Source: Geosiphon pyriformis uo1
Lineage: Eukaryota > Fungi > Glomeromycota
DNA length: 64,000 nucleotides
Reading direction: 5' to 3'
NCBI GenBank assembly: GCA_016748015.1
Contig: JAAOMT010000523.1
Span: 866,156 to 930,155, forward strand
Shown here: one piece after another, positions 18,161 through 29,595 of the stretch
Numbering within the stretch: the stretch's first letter is position 1
Layout: every line of letters begins with the position of its first letter
Position numbers and translations under genes: made by a program
The notes under the pieces: model-generated
Seen by the model: only the letters and a program-made list of their open reading frames with translations
What the model was told of the DNA's origin: nothing
Databases searched by the model: none

Positions 18161-20053
18161 CTAAATTAATTCTTCTTCAATTCCTTTCAGTATAGAACAA
18201 TTCAAAGGGACATAAAGAGTTTTAGTTCCATCGTTATTTCGGCAAGTTCGAATAATACGGTGATCACGAAATTCCGTAAGTTGGGCTTGAAAGGTGACTT
18301 CGCTACTGACGAGAAACTCATTACGACATTTATTATATAATACTCCATACTCCAGTCCGGTATCCTGTGGTCGAACAGGGCTGGTGAATCCTTCAGATTC
18401 AGTAATCTGATTCTTAATCAAGAGCTGAAATATACCACGTGCGCGGGGGCTTAAGCTTGATAGTACATGATGGATTGATTGTGGGTTCAATTCTGCTCCA
18501 CCTCGCATTAAGAAAGAATTTTCGTAACTTGTCTCTAACTTGTAAGGTTGGTAGGTGGTTGCATCATGTTTTACCCAATTAAATCTAGTCGCACACACAT
18601 TATCAATAAGCAAGCCAGCGTGAATATTATCCATCGAAGCAATAAAATGGATATTGGGACTGGAAGCTAAGATGCTGAGGCAAGCATATGTTCTTTCAGA
18701 GCGAAGTTGCTGGCCATCAATATTATGAATGAGGATGTATAGACGCTGTATTGCACGTTCGGAACATGAAAAATATGAATGAATGAATCTGGCCTGTTCT
18801 TCTAATGATCCGCGGGGGTTATCGTTTAGGACTTCGTGGTAGATATTCTTTAAAATGGTTCTTAAATTTATTGATGGAAAATAGCCATTTACAATAAGCA
18901 AGGGATGATCTGTGAGGATGTTTCTTGCGAAATTCTCCAGCAATTTCCTTTTCGATCCGAATCCATAAAACAAAAGGTTGAAACCGGATATGAGCTCGAA
19001 ATACCACTGATAGAATTGGGCCTGTTGAAACTTTGAGAGTATCTCAAGTTCTTCTTGATGTTTAACAGGAAGATTGTTCAAAGTTTCTATTAAATCTTTA
19101 TCTTCCAACTGGGGAAGGTTTGAAAGTGTATTATGGGAAGTGGGAGAACTGTGAAGATCCGAAAAATATTTTTCATATCCTAATTGGTCTTCTTCGTAAA
19201 CAGCAACTTTTGCTCGTTTGATTTTACGCGGGGGCGTCACATTTCCTTCATCTTGACTATTATCATAGTCGTCGTCGTCATTATCATCACTATCATCACT
19301 TTGGAATGTTTGCCCCGGGTCTTCAATATTCTGTTTGTCTTTGTCTGAAAATGGACTGCAACGTGTTGGCGAGATTATGTTGGCTTGGTCGCTCTTGTTG
19401 AAAAATTCGAACTGTTCAGTCCTTTGAAGATCTCCATATTTAGTTGGGCTTAATGGAAATCCCTTCTCTGCAAAGGAATTGACCAAACCACGGTTTTCTT
19501 TCAGAGTTTTGGCAGCAACACGGGTTAATCGTTTAATTGGTTTTTTAATGAATTGGGTTTCGTTTTCTTTTTCCCTAATTAGGAGTTGACTTCCTTCTGA
19601 TGAGCTTAAAATGGTTTCATTATCTGAGACAGGGTCCTCTTTCTGTGCTTCTTTACATTTTTGCAGAAACTTATTAAACACATTTTTCTTTGGCCCCCCA
19701 ACAAATCCGAAAATATTCTTTCCTCTGTGACGAGGGGAAAGTTTTATTTTTCCTTTGAGCTCAGTTTCTTTTTCGTCATTGAAAGGATTGTCTTCGAAGG
19801 TTTCAAGTTGCGGTAAAGAGGCTCTAGCGAATTCGTTTTCCGCTTTAACAGAGTCAACCGTGAGGCCATTTGCAATAACGCGTTTTTGCGGGGATTTTCT
19901 GGGGGATCTTCTGGGAGACTTTATTTGATGTTTGCTTTTTAAACCATTCACTGCTTCTCTTTCTTTTTCGCGTAAAGAAATAGAAACTGTGTTTACAATA
20001 TGACGTGGAATTTCATTTTCTGCTTGGTAGAGAATCGCACGAAGTGTAGACAT
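18161..20053 (-). CDS. ORC2: Origin recognition complex subunit 2, single exon, 630 aa
   Basis: C-terminal ORC2 domain: QFYQWYFELISGFNLLFYGFGSKRKLL, VNGYFP, LIHNIDG, HFIASMD, HDATTYQPY.ETSYE, FLVSSE...QLTEFRDH. The N-terminus is low-complexity with SP/TP sites. Confidence 0.96.
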   Translation of the reverse strand: MSTLRAILYQAENEIPRHIVNTVSISLREKEREAVNGLKSKHQIKSPRRSPRKSPQKRVIANGLTVDSVKAENEFARASLPQLETFEDNPFNDEKETELKGKIKLSPRHRGKNIFGFVGGPKKNVFNKFLQKCKEAQKEDPVSDNETILSSSEGSQLLIREKENETQFIKKPIKRLTRVAAKTLKENRGLVNSFAEKGFPLSPTKYGDLQRTEQFEFFNKSDQANIISPTRCSPFSDKDKQNIEDPGQTFQSDDSDDNDDDDYDNSQDEGNVTPPRKIKRAKVAVYEEDQLGYEKYFSDLHSSPTSHNTLSNLPQLEDKDLIETLNNLPVKHQEELEILSKFQQAQFYQWYFELISGFNLLFYGFGSKRKLLENFARNILTDHPLLIVNGYFPSINLRTILKNIYHEVLNDNPRGSLEEQARFIHSYFSCSERAIQRLYILIHNIDGQQLRSERTYACLSILASSPNIHFIASMDNIHAGLLIDNVCATRFNWVKHDATTYQPYKLETSYENSFLMRGGAELNPQSIHHVLSSLSPRARGIFQLLIKNQITESEGFTSPVRPQDTGLEYGVLYNKCRNEFLVSSEVTFQAQLTEFRDHRIIRTCRNNDGTKTLYVPLNCSILKGIEEELI

Positions 20054-20073
20054 AATTAATTTTTTTTTACAAA

Positions 20074-20132
20074 GAACGCGACTTAAAATCCATTAATTCT
20101 GTGATAGTTAATATTTATATGGAGTCGCGTTC
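20074..20132. promoter_or_regulatory. Inverted pair of MCB-like (ACGCG) boxes just upstream of ORC2
   Basis: GAACGCGACT (20074-20083) and AGTCGCGTTC (20123-20132) are exact reverse complements in otherwise CG-poor DNA, 20-80 bp upstream of the ORC2 ATG. Confidence 0.5.
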
Positions 20133-20754
20133 ATTGTTACAAGGTCGATCAGTTCACCATAAATGTGCATAAAAATTTTTTTTAAACAATAATTTGATTT
20201 TAAATACTGTTTAATTTTAAGAAATTTTTAAATAATTTCTTTAAAAAAAAATTTATTAAGGTTAATATACAAGAAACATAAAATTTATAAAATTAATTTT
20301 TTAATATAAGCTAAAAATGTATTAACAAGTTTAATTGTAAGTTAATAAAAATTTTTAAACAAAATTGATTAATAAATTGATTAATTAAAAAATCATGTAA
20401 TTATGTTATTTAATAATAAATTCCAATTAACTTGTGCACAAACTTAAAAATTAATAGAGTAAAATAATAATAATAATAATAATAATAATTTGTTTTTAAT
20501 TATTTAAAATGCTTTAACTAAATGTAATCCAATTACTATCTACGCATTTTTAACAAGGAATATTACATAGTAGTAGAAGAAAAAGAAGAAAAGGCTTACG
20601 CAGTTATAACGTGTGGCCAACCACCTATAAATAATTATATAATATTTTTTATATAATTATTAACATATTATTTATCAATACATTATTAATTAGAAATAAA
20701 TTATTAAAAATATTTTTTTTTGTTTAATTTTATACAAAATTTTAATATTTTTAC

Positions 20755-20820
<66 letters not shown>

Positions 20821-20849
20821 ATTGGAAAAGCTAAAAATAAAAATTATAA

Positions 20850-20881
<32 letters not shown>

Positions 20882-22950
20882 ATTTATTAAATCAAATTAT
20901 TGTAACTTAAAAAAACCTTAAATTAAAAATAATATTAAATTTTATTTAATAAATTTTATTATAAAATTTTTTAATTTTTTAATTTTTTAATTTTTTTTCA
21001 TAGAATACAAAAGGGTGGCTGGTCACATTTAGTAAAAGTGTGAGCCACGCCTTTTGTATAGGAATTCTTCATTTTATGAGCATAAAAAAAGAATACAAAT
21101 TTGTATAATATATATAACAAAAATATAAGCTTGGATATTATTATAATAACAAAAAGATAAGCTTTGAATAACAAGAAGATAAATTATAAAAATATATGTT
21201 TTTATATAATTATTTAAAATTATTTTTGTTTTAAATTTTTTTTTTGTTAATTATAAATAATGTTAATAATAATGTGTATCAGTTTTAACAAAAATAAAAT
21301 TTTTTGAGGTAGAAAACTCGGATTACACCCTTTCGGAACGTCGCTTAGAGAGCTTCGGTAGTTATGTCATGTTTGGAATTGTGAACGTCCTGGAATGGAC
21401 CCGGGTGCTAATAAATCTGGCGTTGGCCGAGTCTTGGCTGATTTGGTAAACCCAAGCGGGGGGGACCGGTTCATGGTACTGGGGGGCCGGTATTTAGCAT
21501 TCGCCAAGGGTTTCGTGGATGGGGATGATACGTAGACACTGTTGACAAATTTAAGGACTCAAAATTAGTCAACCAGAGAATTATACAAGTGGTCAGATGT
21601 TTTGTACCCCTGCATCGTGAAAAGGATTTGATTTCAAAGGGCAACACACTATCCTACGATAGAGAAGGTGATGAGGCATAAGATTAAAACTAAAATGTCC
21701 CGATTTATGTTAATGAAATGTTGCATGTAGCTAGGTCATTTGTGTGGCTGGTTATGCGGTAGATCCACTACTAATATGTTGTTTGCAAAAAAAAAAATTA
21801 TATTTTTAACAAAATTAATAATAATTACTCAACTTTAAATAATCCATATTTCAAAGTGTTGAAACTTTTGAATTATTTTAAAATAGATTATTTTAAAATA
21901 ATTTTATACAAATTTAAATATATATATTAAAAATAATAATATAATTAAAAATTTTACAAATAAAAGTATTTAATTAAATATTATTTATTTATTTATTTAT
22001 TTAATATTTAAATATTAATAAAAAAAAATTTTTTTTTTCATGTTTTCAAAAAACAAAGATTTTTAAAATAATTAAATTAAATTATTTTATTATGTTTAAA
22101 ATTAAATGTAATTAAAAAATTAAAATTCAGTATTTTTGTTATATTTTAATTTTTAACAAAAATTTAACTTTTAAAATTATAATTATTAAAAAAATAAAAA
22201 TTTTATAAAAAAAAATTTAACTTAATTTTTATTTATTATATTTAATTACATTTTTAAATTATTACAAATTGAATATTATCAATAAAAAAAAAATATATTA
22301 AACAAAATTAAATAATAAATAATATAATATTAAATTAATAATAAAAGTTAAAAATAAATTTTAAATTTTAATTAAGAATAGCATTTTCTGTTTCTTTTTT
22401 AATATTTTATATATTATTTGATAAACACTTTTAAATAATGTTTAAATTATGTTTTTATTTTTTACAAAAAAAAAAATTACTCATGTTTATAATTAAAAAC
22501 TTATTTATTCTTATTAAATAACTTTTATAATTGCTTTTTATTATAACTATTAATAATTAAATTATTATTCTCATAGTCTGTTATGAGATGAATAACTTCA
22601 AATAAATTTTATTCTAAGTTTGATCATAAATAAAAATAAAGTTGCAAAATGATAACAAATTTTTATTTTAAGAAATTAATCCGAGTTTTTTCAAAGTATC
22701 TTGAACATAAATTAACTAGAAATTAATGTACTTGAATTAATAATTGTACTTTATAATTTTTTTTATATTTCTAATAACATTTTTAACTAATTTATTAAAA
22801 TAATAATGAAAAATATTATTACATCAATTCTAAAAAGCATTCAAACTTAAACATATTTATGAACTTTGAGCTTAGAATTGAAAATTAATCGAACCGAATT
22901 TAATCTAGAAAATCTAATTATGATGACCATCTGGGAGAAAATTAGTTGAA

Positions 22951-22990
<40 letters not shown>

Positions 22991-24367
22991 GGTGACAACA
23001 ATAAATTTACCATGTCAATAAAAATTATCAAAACAATTACATATTTTCTTGAAAGTAACAGTTTCATGAATAATTTCAAAAAATAAATAAATGGTCTTAT
23101 CGGGTTTAGATAAAAATTTTAAAAAAAAAAAAAAACTTTTTTTAAACACTTGACAGATGCCAAGAACAAACAAATAAAAGCATTACAACTTATTTTGAAA
23201 AGATTCAATAAAAAACTTTTCAAAAGAATTAATTAAATAAAGATCAATATATTAATTAAAAGCCATAAAAAAATAAAAATAATAATCTAATCATCGTATT
23301 TTCCATATTTAAGATTCATTTAATTTTTTAAAATGTTTAGGAAAATTCGAGATAATATATATATATATATCCTTTGAAAATTTTTGAAATGGTGGGATTC
23401 AATTTCTTACTTTAAAGAAAAATTTATATATATAACCTTTTTAACAAGTTTCAAAAATTCTAAATTTCACCTCACTAGTTATAAATTTTAAAAGTTTTTT
23501 ACTTTATGGAAAAAAGTTTGTAAGCTTTTAATAAAAAATTAATTGTAATTAGTTATGATATCATCTTTACTTTTGAACTATATAGTATATATATATATAT
23601 TAAATTATCATAAAATTGTGAGAGTGGAAATTCGGAAAATCATTCTTAGTTATCCTTTCGAAATACATTTTGTACCTTACATCGTTTCTTTCAAAGTTTC
23701 CCGATTTGGTTAAGAAAAATTCCGAAATGAGAATTCAAAAGTTTTAATCATGGATAATATTTGGTCAGGGTTCTTTGACCTTTAGAAATTGAAAAAAAAA
23801 TAAAAATAAAATAAAAATAAAAAAAAGATGTCTGATTGTCTTATCAGTGCCTTTGTAAACTGAATTTGTTAGGTTCACATTCGGTAAAATTTAAATTTTC
23901 CTGTCCGAAATTACAAATACCAAATATCACGTCGGAAAATCTTAATCTTCTCAACAATGAAAATTTTAATTAATTTTATAATTTTCTCTTTTAAATTGAA
24001 TCATTCACTCAGACGCGATGTTAGTTTCATTGCAACTATAGAAAATCTAAAATTTTTGGTAATATATCGGATAGCAAAGATTTGTGGAAAAAGAGATGTG
24101 TCAAACAGAAAAAGCAAAATTTCTAAAGATATTCTTGGTTTTTCTATAAAAAAAAAACGGAATTCTGAATTGGATATAATTTTTTTTGCGAAAAAAAGTC
24201 AAACCATCTAACAAATTTTACTTTTATTTTTACTCAAAAAAAACAAAAACCGATTTATCCTGTATTTTTGGTTTCTCCTCCTAGCCTTTTTTTATTTTAT
24301 TAACTTTCTCAACTTTTAATTATCAAAAGTGAATGAAAATTAAAAATCGAAAATTCATCTACCCCCA

Positions 24368-25537
24368 ATGCAAAAAATAAAAAAATTTAATCTAGGTCTC
24401 GTCTCCTGTTTATTTTCGTTGCTTCTTTTAGGGGGAATTCAACCTTTAACGGCATTAAATTTACCAACTCATCGAAATAAATCCAATAGTCCAAATGTTA
24501 CTCAACTTGACTCCTCTTCTCTCAAATTAGATCATTCGAATATATTAAAACGTAATGCAAAGTTCACATATTACTGGGTCCCCATGGAATCTGACCCACA
24601 ATTCAAATCTTCAAAACAAACCATTCTTCGCACTTGTCAAAATAAACCAATCACCCGAGTCTCCTCAACCTTTGCCGTTTCAATTAGAATGGAAGGTAGT
24701 GGTTATACGCTCTCGGGTAAACTTATTAATCTCGGGGATTGTGATTGTAAAAAGGGATTCGCATGTTTCGAGGAACTCGACCATCGAAAATTCCCATTTG
24801 GACAATCATCAATGACTCGTCCGTTGGTTCCATTTCAAAGTGCCGCTGTGAATGATTTAAAACCTGGAACAAAAGTTTATGTTCCACAATTGAAAGGACT
24901 TCAAACTCCAAATGGGAGACGACATAATGGGTGTTTAGTGGTAGATGATACTGGGTGGTCGTTTAAGGGAAATCATTTAGATTGGTTTGTGTTTTCGGAA
25001 AAAAATTATAAAAAAATGGAACATCAGAAATCCATTGATAAAGTGGATATTCATGAAGGAACAGGATGTAAATTACTGGATTATGGAACTGAAATATTAA
25101 ATTCTAAAAATTTTAAAGGTGCTTTGAATCGAGATTTAACAAAAGTCCTTGGTTGGACTACACCGTCAGCAAAAAAAAAAAAAAATTCATTTCATGAAGA
25201 GTTTGGGGTGAACTTAATAAGCAAGCTGGCTGAAAATAATGATTTTCAAGTTGAGGTTCCTAACAAAAACATCACAAATGCTTTAAAATTGATTAATCCC
25301 TCTACAAATAAACCTATTCAAATTCCAATCCAATTTCCAATTTCTCCCTACAATAATCCCTCTAGAAATAAACCTATTCAAATTCCAATCCAATTTCCTA
25401 TTTCTCCCTACAATAATCCCTCTAGAAATAAACCTATTCAAATTCCAATCCAATTTCCTATTTCTCCCAACGAAATCCTATATTATCCTTCTTCTTTTAG
25501 CTCGCCAAATAATTTGGAAAATGCGCTTTTAAAATAA
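24368..25537 (+). CDS. Secreted 3D (Asp-Asp-Asp; MltA/RlpA-like double-psi beta-barrel) domain protein, putative lytic transglycosylase, single exon
   Basis: Hydrophobic signal peptide (LGLVSCLFSLLLLGGIQPLTA) and a KR site before NAKFTYYW. Motifs MEGSG, SAAVNDLKPGTKVYVP and VVDDTGWSFKGNHLDWFV match the 3D consensus AVD..IPLGT.VYI...DTGGAIKG..IDIF. Confidence 0.8.
   Translation: MQKIKKFNLGLVSCLFSLLLLGGIQPLTALNLPTHRNKSNSPNVTQLDSSSLKLDHSNILKRNAKFTYYWVPMESDPQFKSSKQTILRTCQNKPITRVSSTFAVSIRMEGSGYTLSGKLINLGDCDCKKGFACFEELDHRKFPFGQSSMTRPLVPFQSAAVNDLKPGTKVYVPQLKGLQTPNGRRHNGCLVVDDTGWSFKGNHLDWFVFSEKNYKKMEHQKSIDKVDIHEGTGCKLLDYGTEILNSKNFKGALNRDLTKVLGWTTPSAKKKKNSFHEEFGVNLISKLAENNDFQVEVPNKNITNALKLINPSTNKPIQIPIQFPISPYNNPSRNKPIQIPIQFPISPYNNPSRNKPIQIPIQFPISPNEILYYPSSFSSPNNLENALLK
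25295..25468 (+). repeat. 60-bp coding tandem repeat, about 2.9 copies (NPSRNKPIQIPIQFPISPYN)
   Basis: Near-identical units starting at 25295, 25355 and 25415. Confidence 0.95.
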
Positions 25538-25758: not shown

Positions 25759-26480
25759 ATGGCAGCTCTGCGTCCCTCCACCGGTCCTGCTGCTGGTGGT
25801 CCTAGCAACCCCCATAGCCGAAATAACCCTCCTCACCGAAACAACCCTGTCGTGTCAGCAGACCCAGACCACTCAACAGAAGAGAATCCAGCCGATTTAA
25901 TTGAGATTGTAACTCTCTTCATGTTGGAATGAAATATACAAAGACTTTTCAGACCTTAACTTTGTCTTTTCTAACTGGTTTAGATTCTTGGTCCAAATAA
26001 AGATATGCGGAACATCACTTTCATCATGAAAGATGAAGATCATACACTAGGAAACGCGCTTCGTTATATTATCATGAAAAAGTGAAGACACAAGAAATGG
26101 GTTCGTTTATTTATAATGTTCGGAATTCAATTTTTTACAATGGTTTTGTTGGTACAGTCCCGAAGTCGAATACTGTGGCTATTCTATTCCACACCCCTCC
26201 GAAGCGAAACTCAATATACGAATCCAAACAAAAAGTAAGCAATTTGTAAAAGGAGAAGAAGTTATATTCAATGGCGATTTCTCGATTTGATTTTCAATCT
26301 TAATTGTGGCTTCAAAAGTCACTGATGCTGAATTTTTTGATAGAAACGACAGACGCGGTGGAGGCCCTGAAAAAAGGGCTAAACGATTTAACCAATGTAT
26401 GTGACCATGTTTATGCCCAATTTGTCGATGAAATAGCTGGCGGTCGATACGAGTACGACCCGGAAGCTAAATGGCCTTAA
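25759..26480 (+). CDS. RPC19: RNA polymerase I/III shared subunit AC19 (RPAC2/POLR1D), 4 exons; missed by the ORF track
   Basis: Spliced translation ...[23 protein letters not shown]|[24 protein letters not shown]...[16 protein letters not shown] introns; TAA at 26478-26480. Confidence 0.94.
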
Positions 26481-28389: not shown

Positions 28390-29307
28390 TTAAAAGAAAG
28401 GTTTCGCACATTTACGATATTCAATCGCTTTGGTTTTAGGACATTGCATCTCCTGCCAAGATACGGGGACCATTGTGATCCCTACAAAAAACATATTTAA
28501 ATAAAGGTGTACAATATATAAAAAACGAGGCTGTTATTACCTGCCACACTTTGAGCATAAATAACGCCCAATTCATTTTTGGCCGTAGATAGATAATAAG
28601 AGCGAGAGTCTCCTAAAGAAATCTTTTTATGAGTCACGAGGACAATATTGAAATCCATATAATAAAGGATGAAGAGGGAATCAGGTTGAGGATACAACTT
28701 CAGCTCTTACAATATCTCCAGGTCGATATGAATCATAAATTTTTGTTTTGTCCTTTTCTGTAGCGCGGATATCTTGTATTCTATAACAAAATAAATTGGT
28801 CATGATGCTTGCCTTCAAATATGTCAATATTGAGTAAAAAATACCGAATAATCCCTTGAAAATCTTCTTTGCATGGTGACTGGCCGACAACCATAATGGA
28901 AACAACAGCCTCTTTAGGTGTTATTCGTATCACTTTTCCGGTTATCTTAAAATTATAAATAATCACAGTTATTCTATAAAGATCAGTTGAATAGAGGTAT
29001 TAAAGGGAGACTTACAATGCTATTAACTTGTGGCACATCCCATCTTTGCTTCTCTCTTATCACACTCAATGTAGGCAACTATTGTTATCCCAAGAAATAT
29101 GGTTTACAGGATTAAATAGAATGTACATTTCAGCTCTATACAATCACCTCTAAATAATTTCACCTTTCCATTTGAAGAAGCTTCTATTAATTTCTGTCCA
29201 ACTAAACTAGCGTAAATATAGTTTCCACGAACATATGTACCAGGTCCTGAAATGAAGTCTTGTGCGATGCCTATCCGCTGTCCCGGAGTTACCAATTGAG
29301 AAGTCAT
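28390..29307 (-). CDS. CSL4: Exosome component Csl4 (EXOSC1), multi-exon
   Basis: MTSQLVTPGQRIG...SGPGTY, FQGIIR|IQDIRATEKDK...SYRPGDIVRAEV|ISLGD...YYLSTAKNELGVIYA, and the C-terminal MVPVSWQEMQCPKT..EYRKCAKP. Confidence 0.95.
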
Positions 29308-29595
29308 TTTTAAATTGAATATAGAAAGAAGCTCGAAATGATAGACAGAGGGGTAATTTAAAAAAACTGTGAATGACTCATTTAAATCCAGTACCATATT
29401 CATCAATATTAGTTGATGGTTTATTACCTTATATAGAAATACTGATATTTTTCTCACGGTAAGTTGATTGAATTCGATTACATATAATCAATAATTTATA
29501 AATCAGGACTAGTGCCTTCTCCGATAAATGAACATATTTGACTTTCTTCCATGACCGCCAAGCGTATTGATTTAATCCGAAATCATTTGGCTGGA

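Follow-up and report, generated by a model that had tools for sequence, protein, structure and literature searches.

MltA of Escherichia coli and its homologues (CAZy family GH102; PDB 2ae0, 2pi8, 2pnw, 7esj, 3czb and 2g5d), including LtgG of Burkholderia pseudomallei (6qk4), are lytic transglycosylases in which a double-psi beta-barrel and an inserted second domain form a groove. YuiC of Bacillus subtilis, a member of the Sps family (4wjt, 4wli, 4wlk), possesses the 3D barrel and the catalytic residues, lacks the inserted domain and forms a domain-swapped dimer. The N-acetyl nitrogen at subsite -2 is bound by an aspartate, D297 in MltA and D151 in YuiC (PMC4499186). Threonine, tyrosine and aspartate have been proposed as the catalytic set, LtgG included, with the threonine orienting the catalytic aspartate (PMC4499186, PMC6667503), and the equivalent aspartate is essential in Bd3285 of Bdellovibrio (PMC10127604). 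Here we describe a gene of this superfamily in a fungus, Geosiphon pyriformis uo1. It occupies positions 24368-25537 on the forward strand of the window, the stretch of 64,000 nucleotides that was analysed (assembly GCA_016748015.1, contig JAAOMT010000523.1, positions 866,156 to 930,155). Judged from the sequence and a structural model, the gene probably encodes an intact secreted enzyme with the fold of the MltA/3D-domain lytic transglycosylases. Its branch of the family is an old eukaryotic one, set apart by an active-site signature and by secretion signals of the eukaryotic type; the nearest named relatives of the protein are unstudied fungal '3D domain-containing proteins'.

Fold and active site

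The Pfam profile 3D (PF06725) matched the whole protein with an E-value of 4.2e-5 and 24.1 bits, a small margin over the cut-off of 23.8 bits; the domain alone scored 26.0 bits, and 26.8 bits were obtained in a six-frame search of the genome. Just 72 of the 138 family members reach this profile at E<=0.01. The NCBIfam scan of the protein gave no match, and the MltA-specific domain PF03562 was absent from its Pfam scan. A sequence search of the PDB returned YuiC as the sole match (E 0.14), with VVDDTG..GNHLDWF aligned on VVADTG..GNRLDLY. For structural comparison, an AlphaFold2 model of the domain was built from the alignment of 138 homologous domains; it reached a predicted local distance difference test (pLDDT) score of 94 and a predicted template modelling score of 0.89. 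A model built from the two Geosiphon paralogues alone had a pLDDT of 30 and was discarded.

Searched against the PDB with Foldseek, the model found MltA-type lytic transglycosylases in all of the first 12 matches (E 8.5e-5 to 1.1e-3), followed by YuiC. Alignment with VIA-align yielded Z-scores of 10.4-10.9 for MltA, with 160-164 of 196 residues aligned, and of 8.4-8.8 for YuiC, with 85-93 residues aligned. Expansins (Z 6.0-6.5), loosenin (5.4-5.8) and GH45 proteins (5.0-5.5) aligned over ~82-101 of the 196 residues. A Foldseek-independent structural search of 48,161 representative chains placed the families in the same order. Since at least 160 residues align to MltA versus about 90 to YuiC or the expansins, the domain comprises the barrel and a reduced inserted domain of the MltA type. 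The insert measures ~80 residues and superposes on part of MltA domain B. Canonical MltA genes of Myxococcota align to the family profile solely over positions 72-157. An assignment to the double-psi beta-barrels of the expansin, loosenin, GH45 or barwin type was rejected: Z-scores stay at 5.0-6.5, Foldseek E-values exceed 0.1 and a match on the sequence level is missing. These families and the cerato-platanins have the barrel core in common with the Geosiphon protein and lack the inserted domain. The initial annotation of this DNA, made from the letters alone, had called the domain MltA/3D-like and had named an expansin-, barwin- or GH45-type barrel as the competing assignment; profile and structure searches agree with the former, with MltA as the best structural match.

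By profile, fold, two of three aspartates and the T-x-Y motif the protein is a member of the 3D/MltA-like superfamily. It shares with MltA the groove between barrel and second domain as well as the counterparts of T-x-Y, D297 and D308. Yet it is not a canonical MltA: the PF03562 match is missing, the domain has ~190 instead of ~340 residues with a far smaller insert, and the identity is 14-18%. Further differences are an asparagine in place of D261, six cysteines, and a eukaryotic signal peptide with a pro-region where MltA has a lipobox. Nor is it a minimal enzyme of the YuiC type, to which it is 22-26% identical over the barrel, because the insert is present. The domain and the positions that define its active site are located as follows.

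24554..25114, forward strand: MltA-like catalytic domain, amino acids 63-249, with double-psi beta-barrel, reduced inserted domain and six cysteines (AlphaFold2 model, structural matches, Pfam 3D)
24566..24574, forward strand: Thr67-Tyr68-Tyr69, the T-x-Y motif, corresponding to T91/Y93 of YuiC and T128/Y130 of LtgG
24851..24856, forward strand: Asn162-Asp163, with Asn162 in the column of the first '3D' aspartate (MltA D261, YuiC D129)
24947..24949, forward strand: Asp194, counterpart of MltA D297 and YuiC D151 (alignment to MltA)
24980..24982, forward strand: Asp205, counterpart of the catalytic acid/base MltA D308, YuiC D162, LtgG D343 and Bd3285 D321

In the profile aligned to E. coli MltA, SVASD of the enzyme stands against SvAvd in the consensus and AAVN(D) in the Geosiphon protein, ALDVGG against vdDtgg and VDDTG, and HFDIY against hiDfF and HLDWF. 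Conservation was counted by column in an alignment of 68 eukaryotic and 70 bacterial family members. The column of Asp205 holds aspartate in 66 of 68 eukaryotes and in all 70 bacteria, that of Asp194 in 63 of 68 and again in all 70. Threonine is present in the Thr67 column of 61/68 eukaryotes and 66/70 bacteria, tyrosine in the Tyr69 column of 63/68 and 67/70. The aspartates of the DTG and H-x-D motifs had been taken as the retained D297 and D308 of MltA by the initial annotation, and the alignment to MltA assigns them to Asp194 and Asp205. The first '3D' aspartate behaves differently: its column is occupied by aspartate in 64 of the 70 bacteria and by asparagine in 63 of the 68 eukaryotes, and the following column, Asp163 here, by aspartate in 55 of the 68. 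A second exchange is seen in the HDGC motif, whose D is present in 64/70 bacteria; 63/68 eukaryotes have N at this place, giving HNGC. Both changes from aspartate to asparagine mark the whole eukaryotic clade.

Distribution and inheritance

A word-index search with the single protein recovered only the protein itself, the homologues come from an exhaustive profile search. This search retrieved 880 homologues at E<=1e-3, 421 at <=1e-10 and 40 at <=1e-30. All named eukaryotic relatives are early-diverging fungi. Among the Glomeromycotina they were found in Rhizophagus irregularis (three paralogues), R. diaphanus, R. clarus, Glomus cerebriforme and Funneliformis geosporum, among the Mucorales in Fennellomyces, Benjaminiella, Choanephora and Mycotypha, and elsewhere in the Mucoromycota in Jimgerdemannia (Endogonales), Calcarisporiella (three copies) and Bifiguratus. 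Basidiobolus ranarum, B. meristosporus and the chytrids Geranomyces and Thoreauomyces complete the list; two further family members were traced to eukaryotic contigs. The fungal orthologues and paralogues (R. irregularis, R. clarus, G. cerebriforme, Funneliformis, Bifiguratus, Basidiobolus) are uncharacterised and listed in UniRef under the automatic name '3D domain-containing protein'. They are 41-48% identical to the Geosiphon protein and have the same signal peptide and dibasic site, but with 203-306 amino acids they lack its repeat tail. In the accessible literature, including a zygomycete secretome study and a lichen preprint, we found no paper on fungal or other eukaryotic MltA-like or 3D proteins.

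The bacterial members, 30-39% identical, are Haliangium ochraceum, 205 loci in metagenome-assembled genomes of Haliangiales, Kofleriaceae, Polyangiaceae and Nannocystaceae, and one metagenome-assembled genome of the Halobacteriovoraceae, obtained in part with a 15-row bacterial alignment. A search with the 138-row profile returned almost solely Myxococcota and nothing new on fungi. In the ESM Atlas, Myxococcota (template modelling score, TM, 0.88) and Mucoromycota (TM 0.84) supplied the clusters nearest in structure. The short 3D proteins of these predatory bacteria, e.g., the '3D domain-containing protein' of H. ochraceum and that of the Halobacteriovoraceae, resemble the Geosiphon protein over the full length of the domain, share five cysteines with it and are secreted or lipoproteins. 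They differ in forming a separate clade with the signatures SVAVD and HDGC, as opposed to AxND and HNGC in eukaryotes, and in being fused to VanY and M15 peptidases. Bd0519 and Bd0599 of Bdellovibrio are possibly proteins of this kind.

The Geosiphon genome contains exactly two copies of the MltA-like gene. On the same contig, at a distance of 709 kb, the paralogue encodes 257 amino acids with 56% identity and stops right after the domain. Its locus (G000:C692:1600015-1600599, reverse strand, equal to L002:1489-2262, reverse strand) codes for a start resembling a signal peptide and for the TYYW strand. Both the signal peptide and the catalytic Thr-x-Tyr are missing from its GenBank model, KAG9293131.1, which has 168 amino acids and starts with MLRTCDKK; this deposited model is probably truncated at the N-terminus.

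In an IQ-TREE phylogeny of 59 domains the eukaryotic copies formed one clade against the bacteria, i.e. predatory Myxococcota and Bdellovibrionota, with a support of 96/94. Within the Mucoromycota clade (97/82), the Geosiphon pair (100/93) is sister to the Glomerales (97/92), and this Glomeromycotina group (94/85, or 95/77 with one more row added) is sister to the Mucoromycotina (100/95). As this topology equals the species tree, the Geosiphon gene was inherited vertically. Rooting was attempted with canonical MltA from the same Myxococcota genomes; on only 115 columns this root is weak, the eukaryotes stay one clade (83 in the Shimodaira-Hasegawa-like approximate likelihood ratio test) and the bacteria are paraphyletic, a pattern that would agree with one old transfer but is too weak to establish it. 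Introns were mapped by matching deposited proteins to their own gene DNA. The R. irregularis orthologue has one intron of 81 bp (GTAAGT...TAG, phase 1, INLG|DC, L083:3296-3376), which splits the NLG|DCxC motif and is missing in Geosiphon; the genes of Jimgerdemannia and Calcarisporiella have two introns each, that of Basidiobolus none. The positions differ between Rhizophagus, Jimgerdemannia and Calcarisporiella, which suggests lineage-specific gains after the family had entered the fungi.

Thus the Geosiphon gene belongs to an old family and was passed on vertically, it is not a recent or Geosiphon-specific acquisition. Specific for Geosiphon are only three traits: the gene has been duplicated, the Rhizophagus intron is missing, and this copy has a C-terminal tail. 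The data are compatible with a single, very old transfer from a bacterium to a eukaryote, which is the parsimonious reading because the superfamily is bacterial. The eukaryotic clade of chytrids, Basidiobolus, Mucoromycotina and Glomeromycotina would then probably derive once from bacteria, with vertical inheritance into Geosiphon, duplication there and acquisition of a repeat-rich tail by the copy described here.

The initial annotation had proposed a horizontally acquired gene. Taken as a recent transfer from a bacterium into Geosiphon, the event would have left an intronless gene beside an AT-rich tract as its scar. The gene indeed has no intron, an extremely AT-rich tract is situated ~0.4-4 kb upstream, and the wider superfamily is bacterial. 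Even so, we consider such an event highly improbable. The nearest relatives are widespread in fungi and closer in identity than the bacterial ones, the tree tracks the fungal phylogeny, and relatives carry introns. Myxobacterial genomes are GC-rich; the gene has a G+C content of 34% and of 0.25 at third codon positions (GC3), while its bacterial relatives all belong to the Myxococcota and Bdellovibrionota. The composition fits the Geosiphon host, with 39% and a GC3 of 0.33 in the neighbouring gene for ORC2 and 33-42% in the flanking genic DNA. Housekeeping genes are close by, the adjacent ORC2 gene is itself a long intron-free frame, and the second copy resides on the same contig. Broad vertical inheritance among eukaryotes, named by the initial annotation as the finding that would speak against its proposal, is what the phylogeny revealed.

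Mechanism and substrate

The signal peptide would direct the protein to the secretory pathway, the pro-region would probably be cut off at Lys61-Arg62, and three disulfides probably hold the mature domain of ~190 residues. A glycan chain is expected to sit in the groove between the beta-barrel and the small inserted domain. Conservation and fold point to Asp205 as acid/base, oriented by Thr67; the beta-1,4 bond would be cleaved and a 1,6-anhydro end left.

Regarding the glycan, we lean slightly towards chitin or partly deacetylated chitin/chitosan rather than peptidoglycan, a tentative preference and not a finding. The lean is drawn from the domain fusions of the eukaryotic members and the clade-wide exchanges of aspartate for asparagine. 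In eukaryotes the domain is fused to LysM in Mucorales, to carbohydrate esterase family 4 (CE4) modules, and to glycoside hydrolase family 18 (GH18) together with epidermal growth factor repeats (rows P0035, P0124, P0043, P0008, P0013 and P0016); counted as cluster representatives, these are three to four LysM, two CE4 and one GH18 fusion. The CE4 module of P0035 has its nearest matches among the fungal chitin deacetylases (2iw0 with E 4e-31, also 8hfa, 2y8u and 7bly), peptidoglycan deacetylases appear from E 2e-19 only. Two more Pfam scans of long family members disclosed no further informative fusions. In P0082 the fusion to a prenylcysteine lyase seems to result from a merged gene model. 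Cleavage of a pure chain of N-acetylglucosamine (GlcNAc) is within the reach of a 3D enzyme, as YuiC formed 1,6-anhydro-GlcNAc-GlcNAc from chitopentaose, and chitohexaose has been seen bound along the groove of MltA (PMC4499186). Remodelling of the own wall or attack on other fungi are the chitin-related roles that we have in view.

Several observations weigh against chitin. All characterised superfamily members, i.e. MltA, LtgG, YuiC and Bd3285, act on peptidoglycan (PMC10127604, PMC4499186, PMC6667503). The fusions of the chitin type are few and stem from other sub-branches, near chytrids, near Basidiobolus and in Mucorales, not from Glomeromycotina; the CE4 module of P0124 matches chitin and peptidoglycan deacetylases equally well, and peptidoglycan is, like chitin, a ligand of LysM. 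The fusion partners in two bacterial members, Peptidase_M15_3 (P0150) and VanY (P0084), both act on the peptide of peptidoglycan: by their contrast to the eukaryotic partners they favour chitin for the eukaryotic clade, by their own target peptidoglycan; the VanY match falls just below the cut-off. A secreted peptidoglycan lytic transglycosylase directed against bacteria, for defence, nutrition or control of endobacteria or the Nostoc partner and without any recent transfer, is the slightly less likely alternative. Its catalytic residues are kept and its nearest bacterial kin are the secreted or lipoprotein 3D proteins of predators (Haliangium, Kofleriaceae, Polyangiaceae; Bdellovibrionota). 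In Bdellovibrio, short MltA-like genes consisting of the 3D domain only are turned on at prey invasion (PMC10127604). This alternative accounts less well for fusions of the eukaryotic clade to a fungal-type chitin deacetylase and GH18, and for the loss of one of three family-defining aspartates across that clade. Moreover, the gene is not expanded in Geosiphon, with two copies versus three in R. irregularis, and nothing ties it to Nostoc. The antibacterial tool linked to the cyanobacterial symbiosis, as which the horizontally acquired gene had been proposed in the initial annotation, finds no support.

The protein might also act without catalysis, as a glycan-binding or wall-loosening protein whose groove holds fragments of chitin or peptidoglycan, in the manner of an effector, a shield or a loosenin. 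Expansins, loosenins and cerato-platanins, which have the barrel in common with it (Z 5.3-6.5), act non-hydrolytically, and the eukaryotic clade no longer has the first '3D' aspartate. We regard this role as improbable, since 61-66 of the 68 eukaryotic cluster representatives retain Asp205, Asp194 and T-x-Y, a conservation that argues for selection on catalysis, and since MltA-type matches span at least 160 residues including the inserted domain versus ~90 for the expansin type.

Returning to chitin, a broader and rather unlikely extension would be that the entire eukaryotic clade with AxND and HNGC was retargeted from peptidoglycan to chitin or chitosan. These proteins would then be chitin lytic transglycosylases, cutting wall chitin in a non-hydrolytic manner and leaving 1,6-anhydro-GlcNAc ends, and the activity, if true, would be confined to early-diverging fungi including the arbuscular mycorrhizal fungi. 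To our knowledge, such an activity class has not been described in fungal wall biology. The clade would represent the fungal branch of a wall-cutting family known solely from bacteria, secreted and conserved from chytrids to mycorrhizal fungi. If chitin is cut, this would be a new chemistry of fungal wall remodelling, and the anhydro-chito-oligomers produced could matter for wall growth and plant signalling. If peptidoglycan is cut, early-diverging fungi would possess an old tool for antibacterial action or the handling of symbionts, with a bearing on endobacteria and on the symbiosis of Geosiphon and Nostoc. The Geosiphon gene itself is an ordinary family member, inherited vertically and not acquired by Geosiphon specifically.

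Gene layout and surroundings

The gene is a single intact open reading frame (ORF) of 389 codons. Each of the other five frames has 23-41 stops across the same stretch, and in 20,000 shuffles of its sequence frame 0 never stayed open. Apart from the catalytic domain, the following parts were distinguished.

24368..24457, forward strand: start codon and signal-peptide-like N-terminus, amino acids ~1-30, MQKIKKFNLGLVSCLFSLLLLGGIQPLTAL (hydrophobic core, shared with nearly all fungal relatives)
24458..24553, forward strand: putative pro-region, amino acids ~31-62, ending in Lys61-Arg62, a dibasic site of the Kex2 type (predicted from its recurrence in relatives)
25115..25534, forward strand: C-terminal tail, amino acids 250-389, rich in Asn, Pro, Ile and Ser (repeat content, Pfam and genome comparison)
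25294..25468, forward strand: tandem repeat of 60 bp in 2.9 copies, 98% identical, encoding three Pro-rich units of 20 residues in the tail
25535..25537, forward strand: stop codon TAA (ORF analysis)

The hydrophobic core of the N-terminus has a mean Kyte-Doolittle value of 2.5 across 12 residues from amino acid 11. Lys61-Arg62 is placed six residues ahead of the first strand of the domain, TYYW (amino acids 67-70), and dibasic sites of the form EKR, ERR or KR recur 5-19 residues before TYYW in relatives from Glomeromycotina and Mucoromycotina. The mature domain contains six cysteines at positions 90, 125, 127, 133, 189 and 234, and five of them are conserved across relatives, bacterial as well as eukaryotic. 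All motifs quoted in the initial annotation were located, MEGSG at amino acids 108-112, SAAVND at 158-163, PGT at 166-168, DDTG at 193-196 and GNHLDWF at 201-207, besides the KR site; its description of a secreted protein with a pro-peptide and a compact cysteine-containing domain agrees with these data. The tail (amino acids 250-389) had no match in Pfam and no other copy in the genome, and is absent from the paralogue. Its coding sequence includes a run of 15 A (window positions 25171-25185, encoding KKKKN) that is prone to slippage, through which the reading frame of the tail could differ from one strain or nucleus to another.

On both sides the gene is flanked by ordinary housekeeping genes. 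Upstream, ORC2 is encoded at 18161-20053 on the reverse strand as an uninterrupted ORF of 630 amino acids with a RecA-like domain (E 7e-81) and a winged-helix domain. Downstream, an exon of RRP4 is found at 29107-29457 on the reverse strand, part of a split gene and encoding the N-terminal domain of the exosome subunit (ECR1_N, E 2e-15). Contamination was rejected as an origin of the gene, which is situated near ORC2 and RRP4 on a contig of 1.6 Mb. The initial annotation had contrasted an intronless gene with mostly intron-dense neighbours: the gene is uninterrupted as stated, and for the neighbours the statement applies to the split RRP4 gene and fails for ORC2.

The extremely AT-rich tract beside the gene, also pointed out there, is real. 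Over most of 20000-24000 the G+C content is 7-26%, with one block of 31% at 21000-21500. This is low-complexity intergenic DNA with many short AT-only tandem repeats (AAT, TTA and units of 8-26 bp). Comparable AT-rich blocks occur at 12-18 kb and 42-50 kb of the window, so that the tract looks like normal intergenic texture of the Geosiphon genome. Just downstream of the gene, at 25759-25880 on the forward strand, a short GC-rich stretch with an ORF is present, which is unusual in this AT-rich region.

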